Under the pieces are notes generated by a model, which was not told the origin of the DNA, searched no databases, and saw only the letters and a program-made list of their open reading frames with translations. Shown one piece after another: positions 1-37,400 of a stretch of 64,000 nt of DNA. Position 1 is the stretch's first letter, and each line of letters starts with the position of its first letter. The translations under genes were made by a program, and so were the position numbers. This DNA comes from Anolis carolinensis (Eukaryota): assembly GCF_035594765.1 (NCBI RefSeq), contig NC_085842.1:9175256-9239255 (forward strand). Direction: 5' to 3'.

Positions 1-693
1 TTCTTGGCCTTTGTTTCCTGTGCGGCATTCAGCATTTGCTTCAGAGGTCTGAACAACCTGTGTCTCCTTGTATATTCCAACTCTTTTTGAAGAGATTTGG
101 TTTGGCCTCTTCTTCTGGCCCCAGATCTCTTCTGTGGTATCTCCCAACTAAATTGGAGGCTTCTCTTGTTCCACCTATAATAATAATAATAATAAACAAC
201 TTTATTTTTATATCCCGCCCCATCTCCCCAAAGGGACCACAACAGGAACAAGCCCAAAACAACAACACAACATATTTGACAGAAAAAACATTCCAACAAT
301 ACACAAAATAAAATATGGACAATACATTAAAATCCAAGCAGATAAAATCAGAGTAATTAAAAGCAAACCAGTGGGGACAGGTTTCATAAAATGGTGTATC
401 ATGGAAATAAGTAACGGCGATAAAGTGCCATATGCTTTTAAAACATAAAGAAGTATTCTAATAGCAGCTCTATTGGGCCTATTTATTCAAATGCGCTCCG
501 GAACAACCATGTTTTCAATTCCCGGCGGAAAATGGGCAGGGAAGGAGCTAACCTGATCTCCTTAGGGAGAGAGTTCCAGAGCCGGGATGGGGGCCACTGC
601 CGAGAAGGCCCTCTCTCTCCCTCGTCCCCACCAGCCGCATTTGAGACAAAGGCGGGGGCGAGAGGAGCGCCTCCCCGGATGATCTTAGGGGGT

Positions 694-13546: not shown

Positions 13547-14677
<1,131 letters not shown>

Positions 14678-15904
14678 TCATTCCTCAGTGTGCGTCATAA
14701 AGACTCAAAGGAAGTGGGATAAGGAGTGGATTGAAATGATCCTTAAGACAACATAAACATGGAGGAAAAGAAGATATGCCTGTTGTCCTTTCCCCTCCCC
14801 TTGTTCAGTGAAGATGGACCCTGGTTGTCTGCCTGGAGCCTCTAAGAGAGAGATGAGTAACATACGCTCCAGAGGCTCCCTGTTGCTCAGCCCAGCCCGG
14901 TTGTTTATTCCGTCTCCTTCTCTCTGGGGAATGGATGCCTTTTCCCTTCACATCCAAATGCTTGCCTTTTTCTCTAGCTTTAGACTTTACCCATTTCACC
15001 ATCCTTCTCTCCTTTTTATTTCTCTCCCCCAATCCCAGTTCTCTTTTCCCATGCTCCCTGAAGGTTGGATTTTTCCGCTCCAACGTACAAGATCCCATAC
15101 CTAATTTCAGAGAACAGCAGAGTCTCGCTTATCCAACATAAACTGACCAGGAGAACACTGGATAAGTGAAAATGTTGGATAATGAGGGATTAAGGAAAAG
15201 CCTATTAAAGGTCAAATTGCATTATGATTTTACAAATTAAGCACCAAAACATCATGTTTTACAACAAATCAACAGAAAAAGCAGTTCAATACACGGTAAC
15301 ATGATGGAGAAATCACTGTATTTACGAATTTAGCACCAAAACATCGCAATGTATTGAAAGCATTGACTACAAACAATATTTATTACTAAAAACTTGACTA
15401 TAAATATAGAATTGCATAAAACAACACTGTTGGAAGTTAAATCCATAAAAAGTTCAGTCTTGTGAAGATTTTTTAAAATCTGTGACCCTTGCCTGCTTTT
15501 CCAACTATTGCCATTTCTCCGCTGACAAGTCTCGCCATCTTTGCGGCATCTTTATGTCCATCCCCGTAGCTTCTTCTTGTTGCTTGATGTGTGTCATTGC
15601 GGTTTCTAGAGCCCAAACCCTATCCTTGTGTGAGATCCTGAGAGGCCTAACAACTTATTCCATTTCTTCTATCCTTGCCGAGAATAGCTTCCTGCAATAG
15701 TTCCTTTTGAGCTCTTCCAAAACGCCCTGATCCATCGGTTGGCATATGACGGTTACATTCGGTGGCAGAAACATCGCCTTCATGTCCCCCTCTTGAAGCT
15801 CCTCTGCATCAGGGTGTGTTGGGGCATTGTCTAGCAACAAAACCGCTTTCCTGGGCAGGTAAATTTCCTTCAAAAATTCCTCCGTGGAAGGAACAAGTTC
15901 CTTA

Positions 15905-16367
15905 GGGCTGGGCTGTAGCAGTAATAAGATCTACCAACCGAAAGGTGGCCAGTTCGAAGCCCGGTCGGGGGTGAGCGCTCGACCTCAAGCCCAGCTCACT
16001 GTTTACCTGAGCAGTTCGAAAAGAGTTTATAAGCTGTAAATAGAGAAATGAGGCAACGCAAATTGCGGGGGAGGTATTTTAAAACACCATAAAGAACAAG
16101 ACCAGAAATGCGGTGACCAAGAGGAAGGTGGAAGGAGGAAGTTCTGATGGCTCTTCGTCATAGAGAATGAAGCAACAGCACCCCCATGACTGAATCTGAG
16201 CAGAACATCAGCCTCCAAGGCACCCAAAAACTGGACTTCCAGACCACATACCTCCTTCTGTTTGTCTTATTCTGTTCTGTCCAAACGGTATTGAATGTTT
16301 GCCGTGTATGTGTATTGTGATCCGCCCTGAGTCTCCTTGGGGAGATAGAGCGGAATATAAATAACGG

Positions 16368-16419
<52 letters not shown>

Positions 16420-16428
16420 TAATAATAA
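15905..16428 (+). mobile_element. Sauria-type SINE
   Basis: tRNA-like head gggctgggctgtagc..., B-box-like AGTTCGAAGCCC, 3' tgatccgccctgagtc and a (TAA)n tail. Confidence 0.8.
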
Positions 16429-16452
16429 TTAGTCTTTGAACATTTCACTGGT

Positions 16453-16542
16453 GGGGGACATGGAAAGAGCCTCCTCGAAGACTGAGTAAATCCAGTCGGG
16501 CGTCCCCTGGGCAACATTTCTTGTAAACGGCTGATCTTTCCA
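16453..16542 (+). ncRNA. HDV-like self-cleaving ribozyme at the Vingi 5' end
   Basis: P1 GGGGGAC/GTCCCCT, P2 TGGAAAGA/TCTTTCCA, P3 GCC/GGC, L3 TCCTCG, P1.1 CC/GG, GCAA-P4-GC with candidate catalytic C16531. G1 coincides exactly with the TSD boundary. Confidence 0.8.
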
Positions 16543-19500
16543 ATCCAAAAGCATTGCATTGCTTTTAAACATTTTTTTAAACATTTTAAATGTGTTTTAT
16601 CTCTCCACAAATGGATGAACACTAAAGGTCTTCATCAAGACCATTGCTGACAATTATGTCTATTAATATAGAAGGTTTGTCACTTGCTAAGGAAGAGCTA
16701 TTAGCCAAAATGTCCGAGGACATCTCGTGTGACATTTTATGTATACAGGAAACACACAGAGACATCACAATGAGAAGACCAAAAATTCTCGGAATGCAAC
16801 TGGCAGTGGAATGACCTCACAGACAATATGGTAGTGCCATTTTTGTACGATCTGGTATAGCAATATCTGCAACCTCTCTCACAGAAGTGAACAACATTGA
16901 AATCCTATCTGTGGAACTGGATAGTTGCAGTGTATCTTCACTCTACAAACCTGGGGCTGATTTCTATTTTACGCCCCCAACCAATTGTCACAATCATGAA
17001 GCCCATTTTATTGTGGGAGATTTCAATAGCCATAATTGTGTCTGGGGCTATGACGAAGATGATAGAAATGGTGAAGCAGTTCTAACATGGGCCGATAATA
17101 GTAGAATGAGCCTCCTTCATGAGAGTAAATTACCACCATCATGTAATAGCGGCCGATGGAAGCGTGGTTATAACCCTGATCTGATTTTTGTAATTGAAAG
17201 CATAATCCACCAATGCATTAAAAGGGTATTAAACCTGATACCTAATACTCAGCACAGACCAATATGCTGCGTAATATATGCAGCTGTAAGACCAAAGTGT
17301 CCCATTCCGCAGAAGATATAACTTCAATAAAGCTAACTGGTCAAAGTTTACAGAGACCTTGGAAGCAGCTATTTCTGATATAGAACCTTCTATAGAAAAT
17401 TATGACCTGTTTGTAGAAGCTGTGAAAAGATTTTCGAGGCTCTCAATCCCTAGAGGCTGTCACACAAGCTACCTACCAGGCCTAAATGAAGAATCACTAA
17501 ATCAGCTACAGGAATATCTCAGACTCTTTCAAGAGAATCCATACAGTGATGGGACTATAGCAGCAGCCCAAAAACTATCTACAGCCATAGCTAATGCTAA
17601 GAAAGACCGCTGGATAGAGCTGCTTGAGAACCTTGACATGTCCAAGAGTTGCCAAAAAGCCTGGCAATTGCTGAGACGCTTGGATAGTGACCCTCTGGTC
17701 AACCATGGACATGCAAACTTAACACCAGACCAGATAGCTCACCAGCTAATTCAGAATGGGAAAACCAACCGCAGCAGAGTAAAGATGAAAATCAACAGGG
17801 TGCCAGAACTTGAAACCCACCCGTTGTCTTCTCCTCTAAACCTGAAAGAACTCAAAGAAGCCATCAAGCGATGTAAGACTGGTAAAGCACCTGGCCTAGA
17901 TGACCTGATGATGGAGCAAATCAAACACTTGGGCCCCAAAGCTGAAAACTGGCTTTTGAAATTCTACAATCAGTGCCTGGCACACAAACAGATTCCCAGA
18001 GTATGGAGGAAAACTAAGATCATTGCCATCTTAAAACCTGGTAAAGATGCCTCCAATGCCAGGAACTATCGACCAATCTCCCTCTTATGTCATCTATATA
18101 AAGTCTATGAGAGGATGCTATTAAATCGACTAGGACCTGTTATCGAACCCAAGCTTATTGCACAACAAGCAGGTTTCAGACCAGGGAAAAACTGTACAGG
18201 TCAAATTCTTCATCTGACTGAGCATATCGAGGAAGGCTACGAGAAAGGCTGCATCACGGGAACAGTTTTTGTGGACCTTACGGCAGCCTATGACACGGTG
18301 CAACATAGAAAAATGCTGCATAAAGTCTACCATATCACCCGGGACTTTGACTATACAAAAACTGTCCAGACCCTCCTGGAAAACTGCAGCTTCTATGTGG
18401 AGTTTCAGGGCCAGAAAAGCAGATGGAGGAGGCAAAAGAATGGTTTACCCCAAGGAAGCGTTCTTGCACCAACCTTATTTAATATCTTCACGAACAATCA
18501 GCCACAACCACCACTCAGAAAGAGCTTTATATATGCTGATGACCTTGGCCTTACAACACAAGCAAAAGATTTTGAAACAGTTGAAAACCAGCTCACTAAT
18601 GCCTTGAAAGATCTCCCCAGCTACCACAAAGAGAACAACCTGAAGCCTAACCCTTCCAAGACACAAGTGTGTGCTTTCCACCTACGTAACCGTGAAGCCA
18701 ACAGGAAACTGAAAGTTACTTGGGAAGGCCAAGAGCTCGAACACTGTTTCCATCCTAAATACCTTGGTGTCACCTTAGACCGAACACTAACATATAGGAA
18801 ACACCGCATGAACACCAAGCACAAAGTAGCTGCACGCAACAACATCCTGCGGAAACTGACTGGCAGCTCATGGGGAGCAGACCCACAAGTAATAAGAACA
18901 TCAGCCCTGGCCTTGTCTTTCTCAACTGCAGAGTCTGCCTGTCCTGTCTGGCACAAGTCTGCCCATGCAAAGCAGGTGGACATAGCACTGAATGAAACAT
19001 GCAGAATCATCACGGGATGCCTTAAACCGACACCTGTTGATAAACTCTACAAGTTAGCTGGCATTGCCCCTCCTGACGTGCGACGGGAAGTTGCTGCTAA
19101 CGGTGAGAGAAAAAAGGTCGAACATTGTGAAGGCCACCCACTGCATGGCTATCACCCTCCTCCCACCAGACTCAAATCAAGGAAGGGCTTCATGAGAACC
19201 ACCACTCCCTCCTCTTGATGTTCCTCCAGCAGCAACAAGGGTGTCCCTCTGGGCAGCTAAACCTGGCAATTCCAACTGGATGGCCCCCCCATGAGGGTCT
19301 TCCTTCCTTCAGGGCAAACCAAGAATGGGCAACTTGGAAGTCCCTGAACAGACTCAGAAGCGGAGTGGGCAGATCTAAAGACAACTTGGCAAGGTGGCAC
19401 TACCTGGAGGAATCCTCCACCTTGTGTGACTGTGGAGCAGAACAAACAACTCCTCATATGTATGCTTGCCCACAATGCCCTGCCTCATGCACGGAGGAGG

Positions 19501-19635
19501 AGCTGTTTAAAGCTACGAACAATGCGATTGCTGTTGCCCGCTTTTGGTCCAAAACTATTTAGCTGTTTGTGATTCCTCTATTTTACCACTTTTAAACTTA
19601 TTTATTATGCAATGCTTTTGACACGAAATAAATAA
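16453..19635 (+). mobile_element. Full-length Vingi (Ingi-clade) non-LTR retrotransposon with decayed single APE-RT ORF; unit 1 only
   Basis: APE motifs (DILCIQETH, GDFNSH, NPDL), RT motifs (GLPQGSVLAPTLFN, YADD) and C-terminal CDCG..H...C. One stop and two frameshifts. (TAAA)n tail; TSD ATTTCACTGGT at 16442-52 and 19636-46; empty site at ~54212. Confidence 0.85.
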
Positions 19636-22492
19636 ATTTCACTGGTCATCAACAAACTTTTTTGATTGTAGTATTTTACAGGAAGAGCGTTTTTTGAAAC
19701 TGTTTTAAAGGCTCTTGGATTTTTGGGCTTCCCAATCATTGCGAGGCCCATTTTGTGGATTTCTGTAGCACTGCTGCCTGCTAACATTGTCAGCCTTTCT
19801 TTACTACGCTTATAGCCAGGGGCTGCTGCTTCAGTTCTGGCTGCAAGACTCCTACTTGGTAACATTTTGCAATTAAACATCTGATCGCCTGTTAGGCTTT
19901 GAGTTTCAACAAAGTCTTGTACGTTTTTCTTGAATGCCTCTATTTCTTGATCATTTGATGACAGCTTCTCACCACAAACACTTAACCGACTGATTCCATA
20001 ACGCTTCTTCCACCTGTCGAGCCAACCAATGCTTGCTGTAAAATCTGGTTCCCCTTCATTAAATTCCTTTCGAAAACACGACTTTTGCTGTAAAATAGGC
20101 CCGGAAATAGGCACGCCTTTGTCTCTGGACTACACAAACCAAACATACAAAGCTTCACTAACTTTTTCATAGTCAAACCTTTTCATCATTTTCCTCTTTC
20201 AGCACACCATTGGTAACTTTGGAGGTACACCATTCTTCCATCTCCAGTCGATTCCTTTTCCAGTCTCCTACTCTTACCTGTTGGACATATTAGTCGTCGG
20301 CTACTTTCTGTATTGTTCCTCCTTTGTCCAGTCTCTTGATTGCCTCAAGTTTCTGTTCCATGGATAAAACAAACTTCTTTCTCTTCGTAGCCATTCTCGT
20401 GCAGAAGAAAGGGCATGCACAGATCAGTGGCGGAAAGGGTCTGCCACTTGTTTGGGAGCGTGGCTGCACTTGTATTGTTTTTGGGCGTGTTGTTGTTTTT
20501 CTGGGCAGCAACACGCTGTTTGTTATTCTATGTGTAGAAACTATGGGTTCCCACAGGGGTCCTGGTGGGAGGGAAATGTGAACAGCACAAGAGCATTATT
20601 GAAGAAGAGGCCATAGCTCAAAGGGAGGGCCCCTGCTGCACTTCACTTCCTGGTATCGCTCGTGAACAGAGTCAAGAAAATAGGATGACAACCATTGTGT
20701 CTGAAAATCTGGAGAGCTGCCACTGGGTCAGAGTACATGATACAGGCCAGACAGACAAAGTTTGTCATTCTGGGAGGGGCGAGACGCAGCCGGTACAGGT
20801 CGGACGCTGTCTGCGCTGACTACGTCTCACCCCTCCTGGCAGGCGACTAGTGCGCAGAGAGACGTGTTGCTGCCGAGAGAAACAGCTGTGGATCCCGGCG
20901 GGAGGCAGACTGCATTGGATGATACAGAACGTTGGATGAGCTAAGGTTGGATAAGCAAGACTCTACCGTATTGCAGAGATTCTTACCCTTTTACCACCAA
21001 CTACCAAATGGGACTTTTACAGTTTTTGGAAGTTGGCTGTAAATATGAGTTGCAAAGGGATAGATTTGCCTGACAAAGCTGTGAATGTGCAAAACCGTGA
21101 CTGTAAAGAAAAAGTGGAGAACAATGATGAAGGCAGAGAAGGACCAAAAAAGGGATGTCTGTAGGACTCGGCCAGATAGAGTGGCATCCACGTAACATCC
21201 CACGTGAGAGAGAAGAGACTGCCTCCACACCATCCCAGTTTGGGAGGAAGGACAAGACTGGACCAGAGGAAAGAGCTGGTGATCCATCCGTTGTGATTCA
21301 ACCCCACGCGGCTCAAGTCTGCAGTCCCCAATGAGAAACAGGGAGCTAGTTTCAGAAGAGGCTGAGGGAATCCCTCCCCCTTGTCTCCTGATTGACAGTT
21401 GGGATGTATCTAGTTGTTATCTTCTCTGTTTCTTTCTCTCATTCTGATTGGTTTTGTAGAATGGTGCATGCTTTTGCTTCAGATTTCTGACTTATATCTC
21501 AGTGTGTACTTTGTGTATTAAGACCTCTCTCTGCTTGTGTCAGGAGAGATGTGGGGCTTGGAGTTTTTCCCTCTCTTTTAAACCCGAGAAGAGATGGAAA
21601 TAGAGAGCAGCTCAGATCCAGTCCTTTACTATTAAAAAATGTAGTTATTAATTTTTTTGTAATTTTAAAGACTGAACTCTGCAGCTTTGCTTCCAAAGTT
21701 CTTGATTTTTTACAGCTACATCATTTCATGCTCTGCTTGTTGTGACCTGGATGCTCAACTATAAGTATCCTGTTGGTAATTATAGGTGGTCTGCTTTTTG
21801 TGGGGTAATTTTCCCCAACAAAATCCTGATGCCGCAGAAACAGAGACTTCTTGGAAATACCATTCTGTCGACTGTCCCTTTGTTCAGCTCTGATTCCAAT
21901 AACTGTCTAATTCTGCACACCTTTTATCCGGAAGCTGCAACCTCTTCACATACAAGAATTTAGGAAAGTGGCTGCGGATAATTTGGGATTTTCTAACATT
22001 TAGGATGAAATAAATATACAGAGTGTTTCAAAAAGATGCACTCAATTGGAAAGAGCTAGATTTCTGCAGATGTGAAACTACCATGAGTGACACTCTTACC
22101 ACTTGAAGGAGAGGGGCAGAGAGTGTGACAGCTGCTCTATGCCTCTCCCAGTGCACAAAAGGCCCCGAGCCCCAATCATTCACAAGCACAGAACACATAA
22201 CACATGATATTACAAGTCACCGTCTTGTGAATGAATGAGGCTGGGGGCTGTTTGTGTGCTGGGAGAGGCAGCGTAGAGAGAGAGAGCTGAGCCTTCAGAC
22301 ACGCAAAGGCTAGCCTGCCTGGTTGGGAGGAAAAACAAGGTTGAATACCACACCAATCATAAGGTGTATAGCCGCCTATGCGTATCTGATGCTACGGGAA
22401 GTTTTTTTTTTTTCATGATCCATTCTCCGGCCCCTCTCTCCAGCCAATCTGCTCCCTCCCTCTATTTTCTTCTCACACAAACACTCAGAGAG

Positions 22493-22495
<3 letters not shown>

Positions 22496-22560
<65 letters not shown>
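22496..22560 (+). repeat. (GA)n microsatellite (shorter and interrupted in the paralog at ~55999-56035)
   Basis: Direct inspection. Confidence 0.95.
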
Positions 22561-22564
<4 letters not shown>

Positions 22565-22765
22565 ACTGACTTTGACTTGACTCCAGTTATGGAAATCTTC
22601 CCACTTGAGTCTGAATTGGTGCTTATTATTATTATTATTATTATTATTACTCTTATGTCATATATTTCTAACACAAGCCCTGCCTTGCGGACCCTCAGTG
22701 ACTGTGACGATTTAGGCTAATACTGCCTTTTGAAACAGAAATCCCCATCAGTGAGGGAGCCTTAC

Positions 22766-22846
22766 CAAGAGAGTCCACAATCCCATTCATCTCCTCCATG
22801 ACCTGCTTGTGCAAGGCTTTCTGGTCCGGATTCAGGAGAACCCACT
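22766..22846 (-). pseudogene. Gene B1 KRAB-A exon remnant; acceptor and 5' part deleted
   Basis: [26 protein letters not shown] with donor |gtaagg retained. The 539 bp present in unit 2 (56320-56858) are missing at junction 22846/22847. Confidence 0.85.
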
Positions 22847-22956
22847 GCCTAAGTGTACTATTCTACATATATTCTTGTTGACATTAAGTGGGTTAGTTTT
22901 GGCCCAGCTCTCCACCATGTTCAGGCCATTTTGAATTCTGATCCTATCTTCTAGAC

Positions 22957-23197
22957 CAGGGGTCCCCAAACTTTTAAAACAGGGGGCCAGTTCACGATCC
23001 TTCAGACCGATGGAGGGCTGGACTATAGTTGGCCACCAAGCAATAATAATTAATAATAATTAATAACAACAACAACAACAACAACAACAAAGAGGGTTTG
23101 AAGAGACCCTTTGGGCCAATTAGTCCAACCCCCTTCTGCCTCTGTGCACCAAAAGCACAAGCAAAGCACCCCTGACAGATGGCCACCCAGCCTCAAT

Positions 23198-23250
<53 letters not shown>

Positions 23251-23381
23251 GGGTTGTAAGAGAAGAAGAGACCCCCTTCTGTCATTTAGCCCAACCCACT
23301 TCTGCTCTTGTGCCGTGGGGGCCGGATAAATAGCTTCGATGGGCCGCATCTGGCCCCCAGGCCTTAGTTTGGGGACCCCTG
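22957..23381. mobile_element. hAT MITE, unit 1 only
   Basis: TIRs CAGGGGTCCCCAAACT / AGTTTGGGGACCCCTG; 8-bp TSD TTCTAGAC; empty site at 56961. Confidence 0.9.
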
Positions 23382-23712
23382 TTCTAGACTGTGAGCTATC
23401 CCTGCTAATTTGGTTTCATCTGAAAACATGATACGCATATTAAGCAGCACCCTCTTCCCATGTCTTGTACCCTTTTGAATCTTAGTTCCATTCAAAGTTC
23501 TTTGAACATCCATTCTGATTTATTTAGTTTTCTCTTCATTTCCCCCCCCCCCCCACCCCTTATAGCAAATGTTTGCAATTGTGCCTTCAGTATTTCACTT
23601 CTAAGGAAAGGCATTCTATCTTGTCTGTTTCAACAGATGTTGATAATTAAGCCTGGAGCAAAAGGCACCCCGGCAGGCCCAGTCCTCCTCTCCCAGGAAC
23701 CCTTCTGCTTAC

Positions 23713-23783
23713 CTGACTCAGTCCCACTCCATCGCAAAGGGGGAGAAACGGCTGAGGATTCGGCAACAGCATCATTCCAGACC
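23713..23783 (-). CDS. Gene B1 71-bp linker exon
   Basis: ctctctctccag|...cag|gtaagc; phase 1 to 0; conserved with 57611-57681. Confidence 0.7.
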
Positions 23784-24523
23784 CTGGAGAGAGAGCAAGG
23801 GGTGGAAAGCTGGTCACAGAAACAGGCCTCAGAGGTGACCATTGCAGTCCTATAAAGAAACCGGTGAGGAAACGACCCTAAGAACACAGGCACATTCAAC
23901 AGCCAATGAAGATGTACAATGTGAGGGTTTAGGACTTTATCTCGCAAGCAGGGCTGTGTTTGAGTGAAACTAGCACTGGGCTTTGTGTTTCAATTGACAA
24001 AAGTGATTCTTTGCTGTCTGTTTGTCTTCCAGCTCAGTTTCAGGGCTCAGCTCAGCTTAGGGTCCCACCTGGGAAGACACTGAAGGGCTGCATTGTCAGT
24101 CCTATTGCAAGAAAGAAAACTGCAAATCAAACTGAAATGACACCTCTAGCAACCCTATGCCTACATATAACAATTTATTTTATTTTTATTATTATTATTA
24201 TTATTTTATTTTTTTACTCGCCTCTTCTTGCAGTTCCAGGCAGGTTACCACAAAATTTTAAAAACACAACCTTTGTCAAAATTCAACAAAGATACATATT
24301 TCTATAAAAGATCCACATTAAAACTGCCTTTCTATAAAATACATATTAAAGTACATAAAACATCACAGAAAAGACATGAGTTTAAGATATATACCCATCT
24401 CAAGGCCAAATGATCCGGCATGTTCACCTTCTGAAGCTCCAACTGTGGGTGTGCACTCATCCCCCCAAAGCGGGATTTCCACTGGCACAAAACCCCAAAA
24501 CTCCCAGAAGAGTCCCTTCTCAC

Positions 24524-24641
24524 CCTGCAAGGCGGCAGCCCCGTCTCCTTCCCGCTTCAGCTCCTTCTGCCTGAGACTCTGGGTGGTGTCTGGTGGAGAT
24601 TCCTCTGGTGCAGGGACTTCCATGGAGTTATTATTATGGGC
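24524..24641 (-). CDS. Gene B1 post-SCAN linker exon (118 bp)
   Basis: ctcttccag|AHNNNSMEVPAPEESPP...ALQG|gtgaga; phase 0 to 1; differs from the paralog by an in-frame 3-bp indel. Confidence 0.75.
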
Positions 24642-24977
24642 CTGGAAGAGCACAGAGCATTCCAGAAGGAGTTTGGGAAATGTTCAGAAACATCACAGAC
24701 CTATAGACCTTTTTTGGAAAGAATAACTCTGAGATGGCAACCTAGTTTGGAACCAATGCCCCCCTCCCCCTCCCACCATTGTCTATGTTCTATCTTGAGC
24801 AGAGCATCAACCAAGCTGAGGGTAGAGATGGAGGGGCAGAGCAGGTGGGGAAAGAGGCCAAGGGAGCAGGGCCTTGCTTATCCACCACATCGGTCCCATC
24901 TTGGAAGAAAGGCAGGATGTACGTTCAACCTGTCCATCAGTCCCCAGGTTAGTGAAACCCAGAGGGAATGCTCTCAC

Positions 24978-25361
24978 CTGTCCTTCCTGCTCCTTGTCCT
25001 CGGCCCGACTCAGGAGGAAGCCTTCCGCCAGGGCCACCGCCTGGGAACAGGTCTCTGCCCCACACTCTCGGACCCAGCTCCCCATTTCTGGGGGCAGGAT
25101 GCTCAGGAACTGCTCCAGGGTCACCAGGTCCAGCACCTCGGCCTTGGTGTGCTGCTCTGGCTTCAGCCACTGGCGGCACAGATCGTGGAGACGACTGCAA
25201 ACCCCTCTGGGTCCTTCACCCTCTTGGTAGGAGGACTGCCTGAAGCGCTGGCGCTGTGTGTCCGAGCTGTCAAGGTCCACACTCAGGGGCTCATGTCTTT
25301 CCCAGGATTCCCCACTGCCCCCAGGTCCTGCTTCAGGTCCATGTGAGTTGGGTCTCTCCAT
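24978..25361 (-). CDS. Gene B1 SCAN-domain exon
   Basis: [53 protein letters not shown] is a SCAN domain; donor CAG|gtgaga; upstream acceptor at 25489. Confidence 0.9.
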
Positions 25362-26510
25362 GTTGGAACCACCCTGGTGAAGAACCCAACCGTATCCAAG
25401 ATGCTTTTCCTCCTCTTCTTTCTTTCAAGGGAAAGAAATCCCTCCACAGGCTCTACTCCGAAATTCTCAGCCAAAAATCACATTTCCTCTGTGAAAGAAA
25501 GGCAGAAAGGTTGTGGGACCAGGCTTTTGAGCAATAGTAGCAGCAGAAATGGCAACTATATGATCCAAGGTATAATGACAGACCCGGTTTGTACTTGAAA
25601 TGCACCTTGAATTTTTATTTAAATGTACATTTATGAAGGTCTGAATGTAACTTAATTTAAATGGAATTTTGAAATGTGACTGTAATTATTTGATATATGT
25701 TTTTTATGCTGTAAGCCACCCTGAGTCCCCTTGATGGGTGAGAAGGGCGGGGTAGAAATGTTGTAATATTGTAATTTTGTTCGTTTGTAATAAATAAACA
25801 TAAAGAAGACTCAACAATGACATGGTTTCATTATATAACTGACTCCAACAGAGACTCCGTCTAGACAACAAAATGGGTAGACAAGAATCGGAGAATCATC
25901 GGAACCAACTGCTACAGACAAAAAAACAAGCCAACTGGGAAGCTGCATCAATTTCTTCTGAAAGATTTTACAATTGATGGAGAAATAAAAGAACCTATGA
26001 GTCAGTGGGTGAAAAGTCTAGGCTGGGCAATAAGTCCATGAGAATGGGAAGAACTCTGGTAAAAATGACTAAAATTTACAAGGAGTCACACAATTAAATA
26101 AAATTTCTACAAAATGATACATAGATGGTACATAACTCCAGAAAAACTCTCAAACACACACACACGCACAGAGATATATGATATGTTGGGACTTGTCCAA
26201 AAGCTAACGAATTCTGAATAAAAATCCACAGAGACATGGAAACTATTCTAGAGTACAAAATCCCATTAAGACCAGAACTTTTTCTACTGGGAAACATCAA
26301 GAAAGACTCTTTCTTTATATGACAACAGAAGCAAGAACTGAATACGCAAAACTATGGAAACAACAAGACATGCCAACACCAGAAAACTGGACGACAAAAG
26401 GTTTCGAAATGGCCAAAAAGGACAAACTAACTTCAGCTGCACAACAAACAAATACACAGAAACTTCCAAGAAGAATGGAAGCCCTTCATTGAATTCACAA
26501 AGAAGCAAAG

Positions 26511-26980
26511 GGGCCGGGCTGTGGCGCAGCTGGGTAGTAACCAGCTGCTATAAATCACTACTGACCGAGAGGCCATGAGTCCGAAGCCCGGGTCGGGTTA
26601 AGCCTCCGACCATAAAAAAAAAAAATAGCCCTGGCTTGCTGTTGACCTAGCAGCCCCGAAAGACAGTTGCATCTGTCAAGTAGGGAAAATTTAGGGACGC
26701 TTTATGCGGGAGGCTAATTTAACTAATCTACAACACCATAAAACTGCTCACGAGGAAAAGAAGAGGAAGAACAGCCACCAATGGACGGTGAAGCAACAGC
26801 TCCCCCTGTGGCCGGAAATCGTGAAGCTGGAAAGATGTTAAAAAATGCCTCTGTGTCTGTCTAAAACTGAATGTTGTTTGTCTGTTGGCATTGAATGTTT
26901 GCCATATATGTGTTCATTGTAATCCGCCCTGAGTCCCCTTCGGGGTGAGAAAGAAGGGCGGAATATAAATACTGTAAATA
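26511..26980 (+). mobile_element. Sauria-type SINE, unit 1 only
   Basis: gggccgggctgtggcgcagctgg head and taatccgccctgagtcccc...gtaaata tail; empty site caaaggaagatg at ~60355. Confidence 0.8.
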
Positions 26981-27299
26981 AAGGAAGATGACCACGGCAG
27001 GATCTGTTGAGTAAAATATTATTAATAGTATACAGTTACATTTTGTACTATTTTTGAACTCTTTATTCAAGAGACTTTGAATAACTGACCTATCAACACT
27101 CTTTGATTAGAATATAGAAGGTGGCAAGCCTCGTTAATTAGATATTTTAGAGCGACACATATATAGAAACACATATTTGTGTAGTGTTTAAAGAAGAAAA
27201 GATGAAAATCTAACATAGTGAATTATCATCCAGACAATCCTAATTGACTAACCAATGGAGCGGATATTTGGGATCCATCTGGCAGTCGTGATGATGAGA

Positions 27300-28330
27300 T
27301 GAAATGCCTGCAAAGAACGGGAAGAGGAGGCGGGAAGGAGGCCGGATCTCCTGGGAAGGCCAGAAGGTCCTGAGGAGAAGAGGGCGTTCGCTTCTGTCTC
27401 CGAGGCCCTGTGGATCTCCCCAACCCCGAGGCCATGTCTCTCATCCCGGGGCCTGGGCTGAAGAGAGGGACGTGAAGCCAAAACCAAGGCCAGGCCTCTC
27501 TCCCCCCCCCCCGCCCCCCCGGGGAGATTCTGCCCGGAGACGGATGACGTCAGGGAGGGAGGCGGATTCCCATTGGCGGACCCTGGGCGTTGGGAAGAAA
27601 AGAAAGGAGGAGCGTCTCTCTCTGTCTAGAGCTCCGTTCGACGGCCGAGAAGCCCCGCCCCTCTCTGGGCATCGTGCCCGCGGCTGCCATGTTGAGCCCG
27701 GGCGGAAGTCCACCGAGGAGGGAGGCGTCTTCCTAGAGAGACTCAGGACGAGAGGCGCCTTTTCCTGTCAGAGCGAGCGCGGGAGGGAGAGGAAGGAGGA
27801 AGCGGAGGAGGAGGAGGAGGAGGAGGGGTGAGTGTGCGTGTGTGTGTTGGGGGGGGGGGGGCTGAGTGGGTCCCCGAGTCTCCCCCCGCGCCCCCCTCCG
27901 GCCTTGGCCTGCCTGGCCCTTCGCCTCAAGGCCTCCCTTCCGGCCTCCCTTCCTGGCCCGGCCTTCCTGCCTCCCCCCCCCGCCCATCTCCATCTCCACG
28001 CAGAGGCGCCTCCCGCTCCTTGGCCTGGCCCCCCCTTCCCCGCTTCACCCGGCGCTTCCTCGGGCAGCCTGCCTGCGATGAGGAGCGGGCCAGGAGAGTC
28101 CGGCCCAGGGCGAGTCTGCCCGGAGACGGGTGACGCGGAGAGACGAGGCCGATTCCCATTGGCCGATTCCTGGAGTGACCGTTAACGGCAGAAGGGTGCA
28201 GCGGGGGGCGGGGCGGGGGCGTTCCTGCCCGGAGACCGATGACGCCAGAGAGGAAGGCGGATTCTCATTGGGCGTTGGGAGGAAAGGAAACAAGGGGCGT
28301 GTCTGCCCATTTTCCGCCGGGAATTAAAAA
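27300..28330. promoter_or_regulatory. CpG island, probable bidirectional promoter for B1 (-) and A2 (+)
   Basis: Very GC- and CpG-rich. Contains GC boxes, YY1-like GCTGCCATGTT (~27683), ETS CGGAAGT (~27703), three CRE+CCAAT modules and a + strand donor GG|GTGAGT at 27828. Confidence 0.75.
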
Positions 28331-28660
28331 CACGGATGTTCCAGAGCGCGTTTGAATGAACAGGCCCAATACAGCTGGCATTAGAATGCTTCTCTCTGTT
28401 TTAAGGGCATACGGCACTTTATCACTCATTTCCATGACACAGCACTTTATGAAACCTGTCCCTGCTGGTTGTTTTTAATTCTATGATTTTATTGCTTGGA
28501 TTTTAATGTATTTATTATTTATTTTGTGAATCGTTGGAATGTTTTTGGTCAAATGTCTTGTGTTGTTGTTTTCGGGCTTGTCCCTGTTGTAAGCCACCCC
28601 GGGTCCCTTTGGGGAGATGGGGCGGGATATAAAAATAAAGTTTATTATTATTATTTATAT
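28300..28660 (+). mobile_element. L2 LINE 3' end, same family as 176-590
   Basis: LPIFRRELKT..FQSAFE* followed by the 3'UTR and a (TTA)n tail that abuts the start of unit 2. Confidence 0.75.
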
Positions 28661-28864
28661 TATAACAGATTTCATATGCAATAGGGTAACAGTGTAAATC
28701 AATGTTTCTCAACCAGGGGGTCGGGACCCCTGGGTAGGTCACGAAGGGGATGTCAGAGGTGTTGTCAAAGACCATCAGAAATACATATTTCTGATGGTCT
28801 TAGGAACCCCTTTGGCAGTCCTTGTGAATGTGATCAACAAATTCTCTGGTTAATTGGGGACCAT

Positions 28865-30548
28865 TTTATTTATTTATTTATTTATTTTATTAGACTTGTA
28901 TACCGCTACTCCCAGTTTGGCTCGGAGCGGTTTACAGAAATAGATTAAAACAATACACTTAGCTTTAAATAAACAATAACAACAATAAAAACAACAATAA
29001 AAACAGACATAGCCCCGAGTTTTTCACCCATCGAAAGCTTGTTGGAAGAGCAAGGTTTTGCAGGCTTTCCGAAAGGCAAGTAGGTCTCGGATAGTTCGAG
29101 TTTCAACTGGCAAGGCATTCCATAAATGAGGGGCTACAATCAAGAAGGCATTCTTCCTAGTAGAAGACAAATGATAAGTCCGTATGTTAGGGATTTCAAG
29201 CAAATTTTGGTCTTCGGACCGAAGTAATCTCTGGGGTTGGTAGGGGGATAAGCGGGCCCTCAGGTACGCCGGCCCTAAACCATGTAAGGCCTTAAAGGTT
29301 AGTACCAGTATCTTGAAAGTAATCCGGTACTCAATCGGTAGCCAGTGCAGCTGTTGTGGAATTGGGGTGATACGCCACCTCACCGGCACCCTGGCGAGAA
29401 GACGAGCTGCCGCATTTTGCACCAGCTTCAGTTTCCGGATCACTGACATAGGAAGGCCAATGTAGAGGGCGTTACAGTAGCCGAGCCTCAAGATGACCGT
29501 CGCCTGGATCACCGTAGCCAGGTCGTTCCTAGATAGGTAGGGAGCCAGTCGCCTAGCCTGACGTAGATGGAAAAACGCAGATCTGCTCACAGCAGAGACC
29601 TGGGCCTCCATTGTGAGCAGAGGGTCCAATAAGACACCAAGACTTTTTACAGAAGATGACGGACGTAGTGTCTCGCCATCCAGGGTAGGCAGCTGCATCT
29701 CCCCCCCACCCGGACGGCCCAGCCAAAGGATCTCCGTCTTCGCTGGATTCACCCTCAACCTGCTGGCACGCAATCATCCAGTAACGGCCTCAAGGCACTG
29801 ATGGAAACTATCGGGTACGGAGTCCGGCTGGCCCTCCATCCTCAGAATGAGCTGAGTGTCATCAGCGTACTGGTGGCACTCGAGCCCAAAGCTCCACACC
29901 AGTCGGGCAAGCGGTCGCAAATAGATGTTAAATAATAGAGGAGAGAGAATAGCTCCCTGTGGGACCCCACAAGTTAGTGGAGACCACGCGGAAACCATCC
30001 CTCCCCTCACCACCCGCTGTCCCTGATTCTGGAGGAAGGAGGACACCCATTTAAGGGGTATCTCCCTAACCCCCATCATGGCTAGGCGATGGGTCAATAG
30101 ATTGTGATTGACCGTATCAAATGCTGCTGTGAGATCCAATAACACGAGCAGCGCTGATCCGCCTTGATCCCTTTGGCAGCGAAGCTGATCTGTGATGGCA
30201 ACTAGCACAGTCTCCGTCCCGTGCCCCCTACGGAAGCCGGACTGGAAGGGATCAAGTCCGGCTGTGCGATTGAGGAACTGCTGCAACTGTTCTGCTGCTG
30301 CCCTCTCAACCACCTTGCCCAGAAACGGAAGATTCGAGACTGGGCGGTAGCTAGAGGAAACCGAACGATCTAAGTCTGGTTTCTTCAGCAGCGGAGAGAC
30401 CATCGCCTCTTTTAAACCCTCTGGAAAAACTCCTCAAGGGAGCTATTTATTATATTCAACAGAGGTTCACGTAATCCCTCCAGGCAAGATTTTACTAGCC
30501 AGGAGGGACACGGATCGAGGGAGCAGGTGGTCGGCCTAGTTGCAGTCA
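28865..30548 (-). mobile_element. L2 LINE, 5'-truncated (duplicate of 2188-3868)
   Basis: RT ORFs 29774-30403 (YADD) and 29024-29773. Confidence 0.9.
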
Positions 30549-31801
30549 TCTGGTGGCACAAGCTATACCTGGTACTACCCAGATGACAGTCAGAAGCATC
30601 ATCTTTAGCACATAATTTTAGTTCGAGCCACAACATTGTCTCCTGTGCAAAAGCAAACTTTTGCCTTTATTTTTCCTTCATTTACAATGTAATGTCTTCC
30701 TGTCCTTGTTGCCTTTCTATGAATCCGCTGCAGTTTGCCAATGTCCTTTCTAAAATGGACTGAACTGAGCAGAACTGGGCAGGAATCATGATGTCTCCCA
30801 CCCAAGGGTGCTGTTGGAGTGCAGAAGGATCTGGAGGGCAGCAGGATTCCCACTCACCCTGGGGGTCTATCCATCTGTCTCCTCTATACCGCCTTCTCTC
30901 ATGTACTGCTGCTAGGCTGAGTGCCTTGGCTCTGGCTGAAGTTACATACCTTTGTGGTATAGGTTTTGTAAGAATGCAGTATGTCAAGGAACTTTGTGGC
31001 CTAATGTGCTCTCAGTGTCTCCAGGCGCCTTGCTTTAGAAACGTGGGGCAGGGATCACGCTGCAGGGAAAGAGAGGATCAGGAAAATATCTTTTTCCCGA
31101 GTTGGGAGAAATCTACACAAGAAAATGAAGTATTTTTCTCCCAAGACTGATCACTTGGGATAGTCTGTCCATACAGATGGCCACTCAGATTTTGAGTGGA
31201 GATGTGAAGAAGCGGGATCTAGGTAGGAAATGCTTTGCATCGTTAGCCCCTTTCCGTGTTGACCATATTATTAGAGGCCTTCCTTTACCAAGGTTGGATT
31301 AGACACAGGATCTTAGGCCGCTATCCCCTTTGCAGGGATTGTTCTTTGTTGGGCAAGTGTTAAAGTGCTTCTCAGCAGGCAACGGGCTCTTACCAGTTGG
31401 GCCAGTCTTTCTCCCCTCTTCCCCTGTGATTGCTACAGCACTAGGCTATTGTTCTTCATGTTCAATGAGATCTTTCTGTACTCTGCTCCTGATAAGATTT
31501 TCCTCTTATTCATCTCGCAGGTAACCTCTAAACGAACCTTATGAAGAAAACATTGCCCTTTGCCTTACGTCTGAAAGGAAAGTACGCAGGATTAACAAGA
31601 ACAAGAAATAAATTGGAGAAATTATATTTCAAGCTACATACCTTTGAATGTAAGGAAAGGAAGGATTGTGCTGTAAAAAGAGGGGTTGGTAAAGAGAAAA
31701 TAAGGCTACAGCAATACAGAGACTGGGAAGAGGAAATGTCCTATTCAGGAGTCCATATCTGTGAACTTCAGGCATAATATTAGAATAATAAATGTTAAAA
31801 A

Positions 31802-33784
31802 ATGGAAACTTCATTGTCAAAATCACACACAGGGGAGAAGCGACATAATTGTAAGGACTGTGGGAAATGTTTCATTAGGAGAAGTTCTCTTGCTAAACAT
31901 CAACTAACTCACACAGGAGAGAAGCCATATAAATGTGTGGAATGTGGAAAGAGCTTCAGTCAGAGTGGAAATCTACACACCCATCAAAGGACTCACACAG
32001 GGGAGAAGCCACATACATGCATGGAATGTGGAAAGAGCTTCAGTCAGAGTGGAGATCTACGCACCCATCAAAGGACTCACACAGGGGAGAAGCCACATAC
32101 ATGCATGGAATGTGGAAAGAGCTTCAGTCAGAGTGGACATCTGCGTATCCATCAAAGGATGCACACAGGAGAGAAGCCACATAAATGCATGGAATGTGGA
32201 AAGAGCTTCTGTCAGAGTGGAGATCTGCGTATCCATCAAAGGATACACACAGGAGAGAAGCCACATACATGCATGGAATGTGGAAAGAGCTTCAGTCAGA
32301 GTGGAGATCTACGCACCCATCAAAGGATCCACACAGGGGAGAAGCCACATAAATGCATGGAATGTGGAAAGAGATTCAGTAAGAGTGGAAATCTACGCAC
32401 CCATCAAAGGATCCACACAGGGGAGAAGCCACATACATGCAGGGAATGTGGAAAGAGATTCAGTGAGAGTGGACATCTGTGTATCCATCAAAGGATGCAC
32501 ACAGGAGAGAGGCCACATACATGCATGGAATGTGGAAAGAGATTCAGTCAGAGTGGAGATCTACGCACCCATCAAAGGATCCACACAGGGGAGAAGCCAC
32601 ATACATGCATGGAATGTGGAAAGAGCTTCAGTAAGAGTGGACATCTGCGTATCCATCAAAGGATACACACAGGAGAGAAGCCACATAAATGCATGGAATG
32701 TGGAAAGAGCTTCAGTGAGAGTGGAGATCTACGCACCCATCAAAGGATCCACACAGGGGAGAAGCCACATACATGCATGGAATGTGGAAAGAGCTTCAGT
32801 AAGAGTGGACATCTGCGTATCCATCAAAGGATACACACAGGAGAGAAGCCACATACATGCATGGAATGTGGAAAGAGCTTCAGTCAGAGTGGAGATCTAC
32901 GCACCCATCAAAGGATCCACACAGGGGAGAAGCCACATACATGCATGGAATGTGGAAAGAGCTTCAGTAAGAGTGGACATCTGCGTATCCATCAAAGGAT
33001 ACACACAGGAGAGAAGCCACATACATGCATGGAATGTGGAAAGAGCTTCAGTCAGAGTGGAGATCTACGCACCCATCAAAGGATCCACACAGGGGAGAAG
33101 CCACATAAATGCATGGAATGTGGAAAGAGCTTCAGTCAGAGTGGAAATCTACGCACCCATCAAAGGACTCACACAGGAGAGAAGCCACATACATGCATGG
33201 AATGTGGAAAGAGCTTCAGTCAGAGTGGAGATCTACGCACCCATCAAAGGATACACACAGGAGAGAAGCCACATACATGCATGGAATGTGGAAAGAGCTT
33301 CAGTCAGAGTGGAAATCTACGCACCCATCAAAGGACTCACACAGGGGAGAAGCCACATAAATGCATGGAATGTGGAAAGAGCTTCAGTCAGAGTGGAGAT
33401 CTACGCACCCATCAAAGGATTCACACAGGAGAGAAGCCACATAAATGCATGGAATGTGGAAACAGCTTCAGTGAGAGTGGACATCTGCGTATCCATCAAA
33501 GGACTCACACAGGGGAGAAGCCACATACATGCATGGAATGTGGAAAGAGCTTCAGTCAGAGTGGAAATCTACACACCCATCAAAGGACTCACACAGGGGA
33601 GAAGCCACATAAATGCATGGAATGTGGAAAGAGCTTCAGTCAGAGTGGAAGTCTACGCACCCATCAAAGGATGCACACAGGAGAGAAGCCACATACATGC
33701 ATGGAATGTGGAAAGAACTTCAGTAACAGTTCGAATCTTCGTACCCATCAAAAGATTCACACAGGAGAGAAGCCACATAAATAG
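31802..33784 (+). CDS. Gene A2: C2H2 zinc-finger-only protein, 660 aa, 23 tandem fingers
   Basis: Uninterrupted C2H2 array with all zinc ligands intact and a Kozak ATG. Acceptor at 31520 is followed by stops in all three frames. Confidence 0.85.
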
Positions 33785-34410: not shown

Positions 34411-37400
34411 AGAATGAATAAATGCATGTACAAGTATATATGAAAATATCAATCTGGGTTTGTAAAAGGAAGGCAAATGTCACGTTTGATAGGAAGAGTA
34501 TTAAACAAAATATGTCTGTCTCAAGAGAGGAAGTTAAAAGTGGGGATACTAGCATTAGATATATTTAATGCTTTGATTGTGTAGCATGGCAGATAATAAG
34601 TGAGATTATGAATTAATTTGGAATGGGAAGTAGAATAAAAGGATGATTAGAACCATTTTATTTGCTATGGTGATAGAATTATGTGCAAACGCCATCCAAA
34701 AAGGTAAGAATGTAGAAGGTGTAGGAATAAAGGAAAAGCAGAAGGTGAGCTTATTTGCTGATGACACATTGTTATTGATTAAATATCTGGGTAGGTCAAA
34801 TGGATAGGAGAGAGGATCATTGAAAGATATTTGGGAAAACAGTGGGTTTATATTATACAAAGAAAGAAGAAAAAAACTTTATAGAACAGAGCCATACGGG
34901 AATTAGAATCAAGAACAAATTAATATACCTGGGAGTAAGTATAACAAAGGACTTAAAAGAAATAGAAGAGGTAAATGTAGTAGCATTGAGGAAAATAGTT
35001 CAAAAAAATTAATACACATCTATCTTGTTTGGAAAGACAGCAATACTAAAAATGAAAATGCTTCTGAGGATAAACTTTATACTTACATATACCTTATATT
35101 TATAATGCCATTTCAGATTACAGAAGAAGAGGTGAATACATTATTTCTTTGCAACATTTCTACCCCACCTTTCTCCACCCCAAAGGAGACTCATTTGGAC
35201 AAATGATAAATACTGTAATGGCAGTCAAAGAAATTGCCGAAACAAGTTACAGAACAGATCTCAAAAAGAAGAAGGATTAGCGCTTCCTCATATGAAAAAA
35301 TATTATAAAGCAAACAGACTGAGATTGGTTATACAAGGAATGATGAAAAGGAGGATGTAGAATAGTTAATAATGGATTCAGGAAAAGTGGAGGAAGAAAT
35401 TCGTAATATGTTTTAAAATAGTTTATGAGAAAAAAAATAAGGTAAACTGGGAACCCAATGTTGAGTAATGCATTAGAAATATGGAACAAATACAGGAGAA
35501 AGTTAATAACAGATGGCTCAATAATAACCCCAATTATAATGGAAAAGACATTTCCAAAAAATAAAAAATATATATGATGGATAAAAAAATTAAGGGGAAA
35601 AACTTAGATAAAATAGGGGATTGACCAAAGGTTGGAATGAAGAAAGAAAAGATTAGGAACATAAAAATTTGAAAGGAATATCCAGTAAAATTTCTAAAAT
35701 ATTAATTGAAAAAAACAAAGGAAAAGTAAAGAATAACACAGAGGGGTTATAATTATGGGCACAAAGACACTTGAAAAATATATCCATATGTGTTAAAGAA
35801 AATTATTATTTAGTTGATATGGAAATGGTACCTCACACCCATAAGAATAGGAAATATAAATAAAAACTACTCAAACAATTGCTGGAGAGGATGCCAAGAA
35901 TCGGGAACATACATACATATGTGGTGGCAGTGTCAATATATAAATAATTTCTGGGGAAAAGTATTAAGAGAGATAGACACAATGAACATTCAAATAGAAA
36001 GAAGTCTTAGCATGGCTTTATTCTCATTATATAATAATAAACAGTTGGAAAAAGAGGACAAAGATGCGATAACAAACGCATTAACAATTGCAAGACTGCT
36101 TATAGCAAGGAATTGGAAAAGGGAAATAAATATAGAGATAGAAGAATGGTATAAGGAAGTATGGAAACTGGGAAGAAATGATAGGTTGACGTGGAGAGGG
36201 ATTTAGAAACAAAGTGGTTGTGATGATGTCTGGAGAAAATGTATTGGAAGAGGATTCAATAAGAAAAACGGAATTACCTCCTCAAGAGGGAATGAAAAGG
36301 AATTTTGGACAGATGATAAATAAAAAAAGTGACTTGGGGGAGGGTAAGAAATCTGTATAAGCGTGAAAATAACAGTAGATGCCAAATGTTAATGTATTGT
36401 AGATTGTACTGAATATAATGTGGCTGCTGTAAAAGGATGTACGATTTTTTTTAAAAAAAAATTAATAAATGTATTTGTAATTTGTATAAATATGCATTTG
36501 TTTTTCTTTCTTGTATTTGAATATAAATTATTTTTAAAAACAGATTATGATGTAGCAGCTATAAAAGCCAATGTGATTCCAGGCTGTCCCGATAGGAGGA
36601 TTCTGTCTATATCCAAGGAAGTCACGGCCTCCTTTCTTCCGCTTTGGTCAGACTCACCTGGAATGACCCTGTCTCCAGGTCTCGGTCCCACAATTCAAGA
36701 CGGATATTGACAGGTCAGAATATCTCCAGAGACGGGATGTAGAGAAGGGCGGAGAGAGACAGCTGGGTATGTTTCACTTGGAGGAAAGAAGGAAGGGCTT
36801 CTCCCTCGGCAGGAAGGAAATGTTGGATCCCAAAAGGGTTGGCCGTGGTCAGGATGAGAGGTGGACGGAGAGGAAAGGCGTGTCCATGAGACCCCGTGTT
36901 GCCTCCTCCTGGAATGGACTCCTAGGACCCTAGAGCCGGAAGAGACCCCCAAGGGCCACCCCGTCCTGCCCCTGCCATGCAGGAAGGCACAATCAAAGCA
37001 CTCCAGGTAGATAGCAACTGCAGAGAAGCCTCCAGAGAAGGAGACTCCACCACACTCTGAGGCAGCCTAGGCCACTCTCCAACAGCCCTTACTCATTCTT
37101 ATTGTGTATCTTTGTATATTAAGAGAAGACCTGTAAATAGTTATAAGTAGTGAATAAATCAAGAATAAAACCTCCAAGGACTTTGGATGAAAGTCAGAAC
37201 TCAAGAGTGTTTATTCAAAGAGACGAACTAGTTTACAAGGCCAGAGGCTGTGAAACTGTGACCAGGACTCTGCAGTGTTTTGGGGGTTGGAATCCACTCC
37301 TTGCCTATGAGACAGTCTGTCCCATTGTATAGCTGGAGGAGGCCGTGAGAGGACTGAATTCACCTGCCTGTCTAGCAGGGGTGTTGTGTGTGTTTTACTC

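Follow-up and report, generated by a model that had tools for sequence, protein, structure and literature searches.

Local excesses of AT-to-GC substitution centered on CpG-rich promoters have been described in dogs (PMC3861134, PMC4350167) and birds (bioRxiv 10.1101/023101), which have no PRDM9. The locus described here, from the green anole Anolis carolinensis, is like them in each of these respects, and in both settings the excess fades within a few hundred base pairs. The dog and bird results come from genome-wide LD maps and many loci, whereas the anole result comes from one locus, polarized via paralogs and one transposon copy. The anole locus also displays a strand asymmetry, unlike the dog and bird cases.

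PRDM9 was not found in A. carolinensis, either in the genome or in testis RNA, and the loss is common to Sceloporus (PMC5519329; bioRxiv 10.1101/2021.06.08.447603). The first-pass annotation of this DNA had called for a check on PRDM9 status, and the absence reported in these two sources agrees with the interpretation it offered. Recombination rate correlates with GC3 in A. carolinensis, and a broad-scale conversion bias has been inferred (bioRxiv 10.1101/352922). Such broad-scale work (bioRxiv 10.1101/352922, PMC4316630) concerns the same species and the same force as the present locus, at the coding-sequence or 5-kb scale. In the literature on recombination, PRDM9, and gene-conversion bias, our searches turned up no description of promoter hotspots mapped at fine scale in an anole.

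Having no isochores, the green anole was long thought to be weak or lacking in conversion bias. Once moved into the pseudoautosomal region, the mouse Fxy gene reportedly acquired G/C many times faster than expected under neutrality, as did several human accelerated regions. Such gains affect coding and noncoding DNA alike. As in those cases, a short stretch at the anole locus appears to have gained G/C after a change of context; here the new context is closeness to a promoter island in a tandem family, whereas for Fxy it is a highly recombining chromosome end. Multigene families, such as the histone and Hsp70 genes, can also become GC enriched via conversion between paralogs. The anole locus likewise belongs to a tandem, highly similar family with signs of conversion (at 27110-27262). 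Unlike the histone and Hsp70 cases, however, only the island-adjacent anole copy is GC shifted, and the many exchanging AT-type copies are not.

Duplicated units and their CpG islands

The window, i.e., the whole 64,000-bp stretch of DNA analyzed, corresponds to ∼9.175 to 9.239 Mb of chromosome CM069368.1 (GCA_035594765.1), within a SCAN-zinc-finger cluster. It contains a tandem segmental duplication with units of 26 to 33 kb (unit 1, 1983-27517; unit 2, 28661-60889). Both units hold a plus-strand zinc-finger array with a period of 84 bp and a minus-strand gene with a SCAN exon and a zinc-finger exon (24810-25361 and 13547-14671, respectively, in unit 1). The SCAN open reading frame (ORF) of unit 1 is an exact match to an A. 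carolinensis protein (CM069368.1, 9,200,062-9,200,616). The ORF, the two islands, and the spacer of unit 2 are located as follows.

24810 to 25361, minus strand: SCAN-domain ORF of the minus-strand gene, its 5' end directed into island 1
27506 to 28302, no strand: CpG island 1, between the units (797 bp, GC 69.3%, CpG o/e 0.69)
60878 to 61859, no strand: unit 2 spacer (982 bp, GC 45%, CpG o/e 0.22), composed of an element, a (TA)n run, and SINE fragments
62482 to 63020, no strand: core of CpG island 2 (GC 69%, CpG o/e 0.64), with motif copies at 62550 and 62654

Within island 1, a 20-nt motif occurs three times (27530, 28116, and 28225), in each case ahead of a CCAAT box; there is also one CRE, at 27545. 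An exon-like stretch on the plus strand ends in a GTGAGT donor (27826). Island 1 is likely a bidirectional promoter. The focal segment of this study lies on the SCAN gene's side of island 1, just downstream of the expected start site of this minus-strand gene. The corresponding segment of unit 2 had been described in the first-pass annotation as ∼1 kb further from its own island, which matches the length of the spacer (982 bp); the spacer divides this segment from a GC-rich low-complexity block, and the true core of island 2 is at least 1.6 kb away. An N gap beside island 2 (62353-62481) was left unfilled.

The islands also differ in the order of their parts. Island 1 (27518-28302) is hybrid-like, with one motif and the exon-like stretch on the left and two further motifs on the right. 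Both island 2 (62539-62956) and the island of a paralog, L003 (4600-5146), have a simple order, in which two motifs are followed by the exon. The hybrid layout, set against the simple order elsewhere, suggests unequal exchange between motif repeats.

The GC-rich segment abutting island 1

Three stretches define the contrast between the units.

27301 to 27505, no strand: GC-type segment of unit 1 (GC 62.9%, CpG o/e 0.45), abutting island 1
60675 to 60877, no strand: AT-type segment of unit 2 (GC 42.9%), a type also found at no fewer than six other loci of the chromosome
26980 to 27300, no strand: graded flank of unit 1, along which divergence and GC excess drop with distance from the island; it holds the patch at 27110-27262

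In a global alignment, the two focal segments are colinear over 202 columns, with 74.3% identity and two 3-bp indels. G/C in unit 1 is paired with A/T in unit 2 at 43 sites, while the opposite is found at 3 sites; the remaining differences comprise four G/C-to-G/C and two A/T-to-A/T pairs. A manual count in the first-pass annotation (∼41 versus 2) is thus borne out. Over the other 14,178 aligned columns (unit 1, 1983-26511; unit 2, 28661-60360), the same comparison yields 269:228 at 95.7% identity. Relative to this background, the focal segment stands apart in both direction (43:3; binomial P = 5e-9) and divergence (26% versus 4.3%; Fisher P = 3e-25). Among 253 sliding windows, the focal extreme reaches +40, and the maximum elsewhere is +8.

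The 43 sites include 25 transitions and 18 transversions, and only 10 of the 43 fall within a CpG of unit 1 (7 of these 10 being transitions). These counts agree with the earlier remark that many of the differences are transversions and that CpG decay is not the whole explanation. Neither neutral decay nor CpG loss can account for a change this rapid and this lopsided. With a CpG o/e of 0.45, compared to 0.69 in the island, the segment has gained GC without acquiring full island character.

Moving off the island edge, the G/C excess per 50 bp is 9, 17, 8, 8, 6, 6, 4, 3, 2, 0, and 1; it is gone within ∼400 bp of island 1, in keeping with an effect graded by closeness to the island. At this one locus, ∼40% of A/T sites are now G/C across ∼350 bp of the island-adjoining copy. 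Divergence per 80 bp rises smoothly toward the island (5, 7.5, 14, 19, 22, 29, and 32%). A single ectopic conversion tract was rejected as the source of the focal contrast, given this smooth rise in place of sharp boundaries. Among the 12 sampled family loci (see below), no donor for the focal GC-type sequence was found other than a near-identical copy at 0.44 Mb (L005).

The graded flank includes a 150-bp patch (27110-27262) that differs from L005 (6110-6260) by 17 mismatches and 12 gap columns. The patch is flanked by 1.7 kb and 240 bp in which unit 1 and L005 do not differ at all; inside the patch, each matches the states of different paralogs. The patch, which is 250 to 400 bp from the island, looks like a short conversion tract between paralogs. 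Further out, a 468-bp insertion with a SINE tail at its end (26512-26979) is present in unit 1 and L005 and missing from unit 2; it therefore arrived later than the split of the two types.

Paralogs and the polarity of the changes

Relatives were found by a search with the SCAN protein (a single exon), which retrieved 14 loci, 12 of them from the family cluster of the same assembly. These 12 sampled loci (L001 to L007 and L010 to L014) are on the chromosome or on unplaced scaffolds and belong to a family of at least 40 members. Among them, the GC type is confined to unit 1 and L005. The latter copies window positions 15573-33162, with zero mismatches to unit 1 across 25400-27100. We dropped L005 as an independent GC-type copy, as this identical 1.7 kb indicates that it was duplicated very recently or is the same region assembled again. 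The AT type is shared by unit 2, the copies at 0.22, 0.29, 9.47, 9.79, and 9.96 Mb, and scaffolds, which are 95 to 99% identical to unit 2 and have nearly all A/T states in common. One intermediate, L003 (9.93 Mb), has a focal segment with 50% GC that is 81% identical to unit 1 and 86% identical to unit 2; its gene body groups with that of unit 2 (97% identity), and this grouping is lost near the island. About 14 of the 43 focal sites are common to L003.

Because the types recur at other loci, the two are older than the flanks of units 1 and 2 suggest. A reading of the contrast as a change in unit 1 after the duplication of these units fails, since the GC and AT types are older lineages and at least six loci carry the AT type. 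Exchange between copies has made a mosaic of the family.

Three near-identical locus pairs (L013/L014, L010/L011, and L005/window) lie ∼9 Mb apart on CM069368.1, at 0.2 to 0.45 Mb versus 9.2 to 9.8 Mb. In the first two pairs, both members encode the same SCAN protein and have almost equal segment-to-window identity. The AT-type copies L013 and L014 share a deletion of ∼137 bp in the element fragment (at ∼6449, equivalent to window positions 60992-61128). More near-identical copies are present on scaffolds JAWQEF010000029.1 and JAWQEF010000038.1. The pairs point to a recent, large-scale duplication of the cluster or, alternatively, to double assembly of one region. L005, identical to the window over long stretches, may thus be a second assembly of the region, which speaks for chance, misalignment, or an assembly artifact as the source of the focal contrast. 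We regard this as extremely unlikely: the alignment is colinear with only two short indels, the bias has the P value of 5e-9 given above, and both types recur in independent loci and scaffolds.

Two more distant relatives were considered as outgroups. For Anolis sagrei (L008), only the SCAN exon, other gene-body stretches, and repeats align, with no homology to the segment. The upstream sequence of a more distant A. carolinensis paralog (L009, 18.8 Mb) likewise has no homology to the segment. The changes were polarized with a transposable element; the first-pass annotation had proposed an outgroup or a repeat consensus.

60906 to 61142, no strand: transposable-element-derived stretch of unit 2, following the segment and a poly-C run; used for polarizing
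9628 to 9835, minus strand: outgroup, an old, dispersed copy of the same element, with a unit 2 duplicate at 36271-36479

The element stretch is deleted in unit 1 and kept, in GC-shifted form, in L005 (214 bp) and L003; the GC type in this adjoining stretch is accordingly L005, not unit 1. The outgroup is one old element copy, which spans the adjoining stretch and not the focal 205 bp, and the sample in effect consists of one GC-type lineage and one intermediate copy. When aligned via the GC type, the outgroup fitted poorly, with many ambiguous columns; we relied instead on independent pairwise alignments, by which identity to the outgroup is 87 to 88% for the AT type, 79% for L003, and 72% for the GC type.

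Across 119 outgroup-polarized columns, changes found in the GC type only are 11 A/T-to-G/C, 1 G/C-to-A/T, and 0 A/T-to-A/T, and those common to the GC type and L003 are 8, 0, and 6, respectively. L003 alone carries four A/T-to-G/C, four G/C-to-A/T, and one A/T-to-A/T, compared to one, one, and two for the AT type alone. The path from the outgroup to the GC type is thus 19 A/T-to-G/C to 1 G/C-to-A/T. With L003 in place of the outgroup, the GC-type branch of the adjoining stretch shows 19 A/T-to-G/C and 2 G/C-to-A/T changes. From the identities and polarized counts, the AT type is near the ancestor; L003 is sister to the GC type, which is derived. The identities (72% versus 87 to 88%) further indicate that the GC lineage evolved ∼6 times faster in the adjoining stretch.

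A three-way comparison of the focal segment with L003 gives 29 A/T-to-G/C changes and 1 G/C-to-A/T change on the unit 1 branch. The branch between the AT type and the other two, which is unrooted, carries 2 A/T-to-G/C and 14 G/C-to-A/T changes. L003 alone has three A/T-to-G/C and one G/C-to-A/T among seven changes in total, with no clear bias. Judged by contiguity with the polarized stretch, the ambiguous 14 probably stem mostly from early A/T-to-G/C changes that the GC type has in common with L003. The GC-rich state as derived and the AT-rich state as ancestral-like, both implied by the first-pass annotation, are upheld by the element outgroup (19:1, adjoining stretch) and the sister L003 (29:1, focal segment).

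These results bear directly on decay in unit 2, in which an ancestral GC-rich island shore would have lost G/C after insertions distanced the segment from its island. The unit 2 spacer does hold inserted repeats, unit 2 and its close relative L002 have undergone recent G/C-to-A/T changes at 27350 (CpG to TpG) and 27474, and, if L003 is the only reference, GC-to-AT change on the AT-type branch could underlie 14 of the 43 sites. The AT type is nonetheless nearest the outgroup and has only four changes of its own in the adjoining stretch, one of them GC to AT. At sites where the GC type and L003 have G/C and the AT type has A/T, the outgroup has A/T eight times and G/C once. CpG transitions account for only 7 of the 43 sites, unlike methylation-driven island loss, and neutral decay cannot outpace the neutral rate. 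The outgroup rules out a GC-rich ancestor for 60906-61048, and we consider decay in unit 2 as a whole very improbable.

L003 was also examined as a simple recombinant of both types. This was rejected, as its matches to the two are interleaved; they are slightly clustered (runs test, P = 0.03 only), and some mosaic exchange is possible.

Another explanation draws on older paralogy and ectopic exchange. The GC segment and the left part of island 1 would derive from a separate, older unit lineage that unequal crossing-over or conversion set beside unit 2. The divergence would then reflect age and blocked homogenization at the breakpoint, and the difference in composition would have built up slowly. 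Several observations are consistent with this: both types are found in other copies; by its gene body (97%), L003 falls with unit 2, but not near the island; the sequence to the right of island 1 matches the L003 locus at 99.2% identity, compared to a 19% difference on the left; the patch at 27110-27262 indicates conversion; and island 1 itself is hybrid-like, with one motif and the exon on its left and two motifs on its right. The higher divergence near the junction could partly stem from older coalescence instead of a faster rate. Older paralogy covers the amount of divergence but not its direction, given the 19:1 outgroup-polarized path to the GC type and the much shorter path to the AT type. 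We view it as unlikely, though credible, as a full account. Because it leaves the direction unexplained, a biased process near the island is needed anyway, and older paralogy complements GC-biased gene conversion more than it competes with it.

The copies also differ in their distance to the promoter. The focal segment lies 0 bp from the promoter in unit 1 and 214 bp from a promoter motif in L005. In L003, it is 1.17 kb from the island, behind a minisatellite with 72-bp units (L003 5258-6227; ∼13 units, 90 to 93% alike), which has grown from the end of the element fragment. In the AT type, ∼1 kb of element, (TA)n, and SINE fragments, followed by the low-complexity GC block, places it 1 to 1.7 kb from the island. 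Along this series, the near copy appears to have kept gaining G/C, the moved-away L003 to have stopped (own changes, 4:4), and the always-far AT type to have remained unchanged.

The other flank of island 1 involves two copies of a second element family.

28303 to 28664, plus strand: element X, cut off at the island 1 junction
176 to 667, minus strand: element Y, an older, separate copy of the same family, 83% identical to X

The first-pass annotation had noted that an L2 end at 28340-28420 is GC shifted relative to its relative at 420-490. The shift itself is confirmed, with a G/C excess of X over Y (176-539, reverse strand) of 21:8 overall and 9:0 in 28356-28415, but its attribution to island 1 did not stand. 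L003 contains a full-length X (490 bp), in no contact with an island, that is 99.2% identical to the X of the window; the junction of island 1 and X is thus young and uninformative. Compared to the L003 copy, X shows no GC shift on its flank of island 1, and the comparison of X and Y was dropped as polarized evidence for an island effect. In L003 (77-1053), X and Y form a head-to-head inverted pair of 490-bp elements; at the start of unit 1, X is replaced by ∼1.3 kb of other sequence (668-1982).

Strand asymmetry and probable GC-biased gene conversion

Pooled over 27301-27505 and L005 5640-5860, the A/T-to-G/C changes (n = 65) comprise 23 A>C, 22 T>C, 11 A>G, and 9 T>G. On the plus strand, C was gained 45 times and G 20 times (P = 0.003), departing from the strand neutrality expected of GC-biased gene conversion. 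The transition-to-transversion ratio is 1.03, compared to 2.17 in the background (P = 0.0075; P = 0.077 versus non-CpG sites). Gain of C on the plus strand equals gain of G on the sense strand of the minus-strand gene; the asymmetry fits a segment that would be transcribed on the minus strand from the island. Together with the low ratio, it suggests a transcription-linked or other promoter-proximal input acting alongside. Conversion bias by itself predicts neither the strand asymmetry nor the richness in transversions.

Seven GGCC words have been created in unit 1 (27340, 27358, 27404, 27430, 27450, 27488, and 27493), with none in unit 2 and about two expected (shuffle P ∼0.001 to 0.003 in a post hoc test). 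Several of them arose from the same GGAC/AGAC-to-GGCC change.

The spectrum raises the prospect of promoter-proximal mutation or selection without any conversion bias. Transcription or R loops could have caused strand-asymmetric mutation downstream of the minus-strand start, or selection could have favored G-rich 5' sequence or GGCC-type motifs. The 45:20 gain of C over G, the excess of A>C over A>G (23 versus 11), the transition-to-transversion ratio of ∼1, and the GGCC words (seven versus none, with the post hoc P value given above) all agree with such a process. Known transcription-linked asymmetries, however, are of modest size and comprise GC-to-AT changes as well; none is known to produce a bias of 19:1 or 29:1 or a rate excess of about sixfold. 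Some 40 selected changes within 200 bp in one copy of a fast-duplicating family are likewise unlikely. Mutation or selection acting on its own is, in our judgment, improbable.

We favor GC-biased gene conversion at a promoter hotspot as the driver of the GC burst, with a probability of roughly 55% as judged from the pattern at one locus. Raised recombination here, with conversion bias as the cause, is what we infer from the observed asymmetry, gradient, polarity, and rate excess. Conversion between paralogs is visible at this spot in the patch at 27110-27262, which is the only, and indirect, sign of raised recombination. A hotspot of this kind is consistent with changes that run one way and include transversions and non-CpG sites; it also fits the rate excess, the gradient, the partial island character, and the absence of PRDM9. 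This is also the mechanism proposed in the first-pass annotation, of which the derived GC state (19:1 and 29:1), the gradient, and the PRDM9 status have held up. Its use of the L2 end has not, the two types are older lineages than the unit 1/unit 2 contrast implies, and the spectrum is strand-asymmetric.

The sequence of events may have been as follows. A pair of SCAN-zinc-finger genes would have shared a bidirectional CpG-island promoter, with AT-rich, partly transposon-derived sequence beside it. In one lineage (unit 1 and the 0.44-Mb copy), a deletion or rearrangement would have brought this sequence within ∼0 to 400 bp of the promoter core. A dense, near one-way series of A/T-to-G/C changes would then have followed, several times faster than in the paralogs. 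L003 would share the early changes; later, it would have come to lie 1.2 kb off behind its minisatellite, with unbiased changes of its own. The common AT type, 1 to 1.7 kb from the island, would have stayed near the ancestral state. In this species, which lacks PRDM9, a stable recombination hotspot at the promoter would have driven the series through GC-biased gene conversion. This conversion would be allelic and possibly also between paralogs, and strand-asymmetric mutational input, as from transcription starting at the island, may feed into it. In the focal segment, no A/T-G/C differences were found between unit 1 and L005, and there is hence no sign of the process running now.

The locus would constitute a fine-scale anole example of a known phenomenon, with an added strand asymmetry. 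The change of ∼40% of A/T sites to G/C within ∼350 bp of the island, with paralogs at least 1 kb away unchanged, provides a concrete prediction for recombination maps and allele frequencies. It also suggests a genome-wide test, in which transposon-polarized changes would be compared with distance to CpG islands. For annotators, the locus illustrates that divergence between paralogs beside islands is not clock-like.

More generally, and tentatively, the CpG-island promoters of the PRDM9-less anole may be stable, self-extending conversion hotspots that recode neighboring AT-rich transposon DNA within the lifetime of a young gene family. The strength of this effect would be set by distance to the core, and transcription would add a strand component. 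If true, the copies at 0 to 0.2 kb, at 1.2 kb (once close), and at 1 to 1.7 kb would form a natural distance series by which the growth of an island can be measured.
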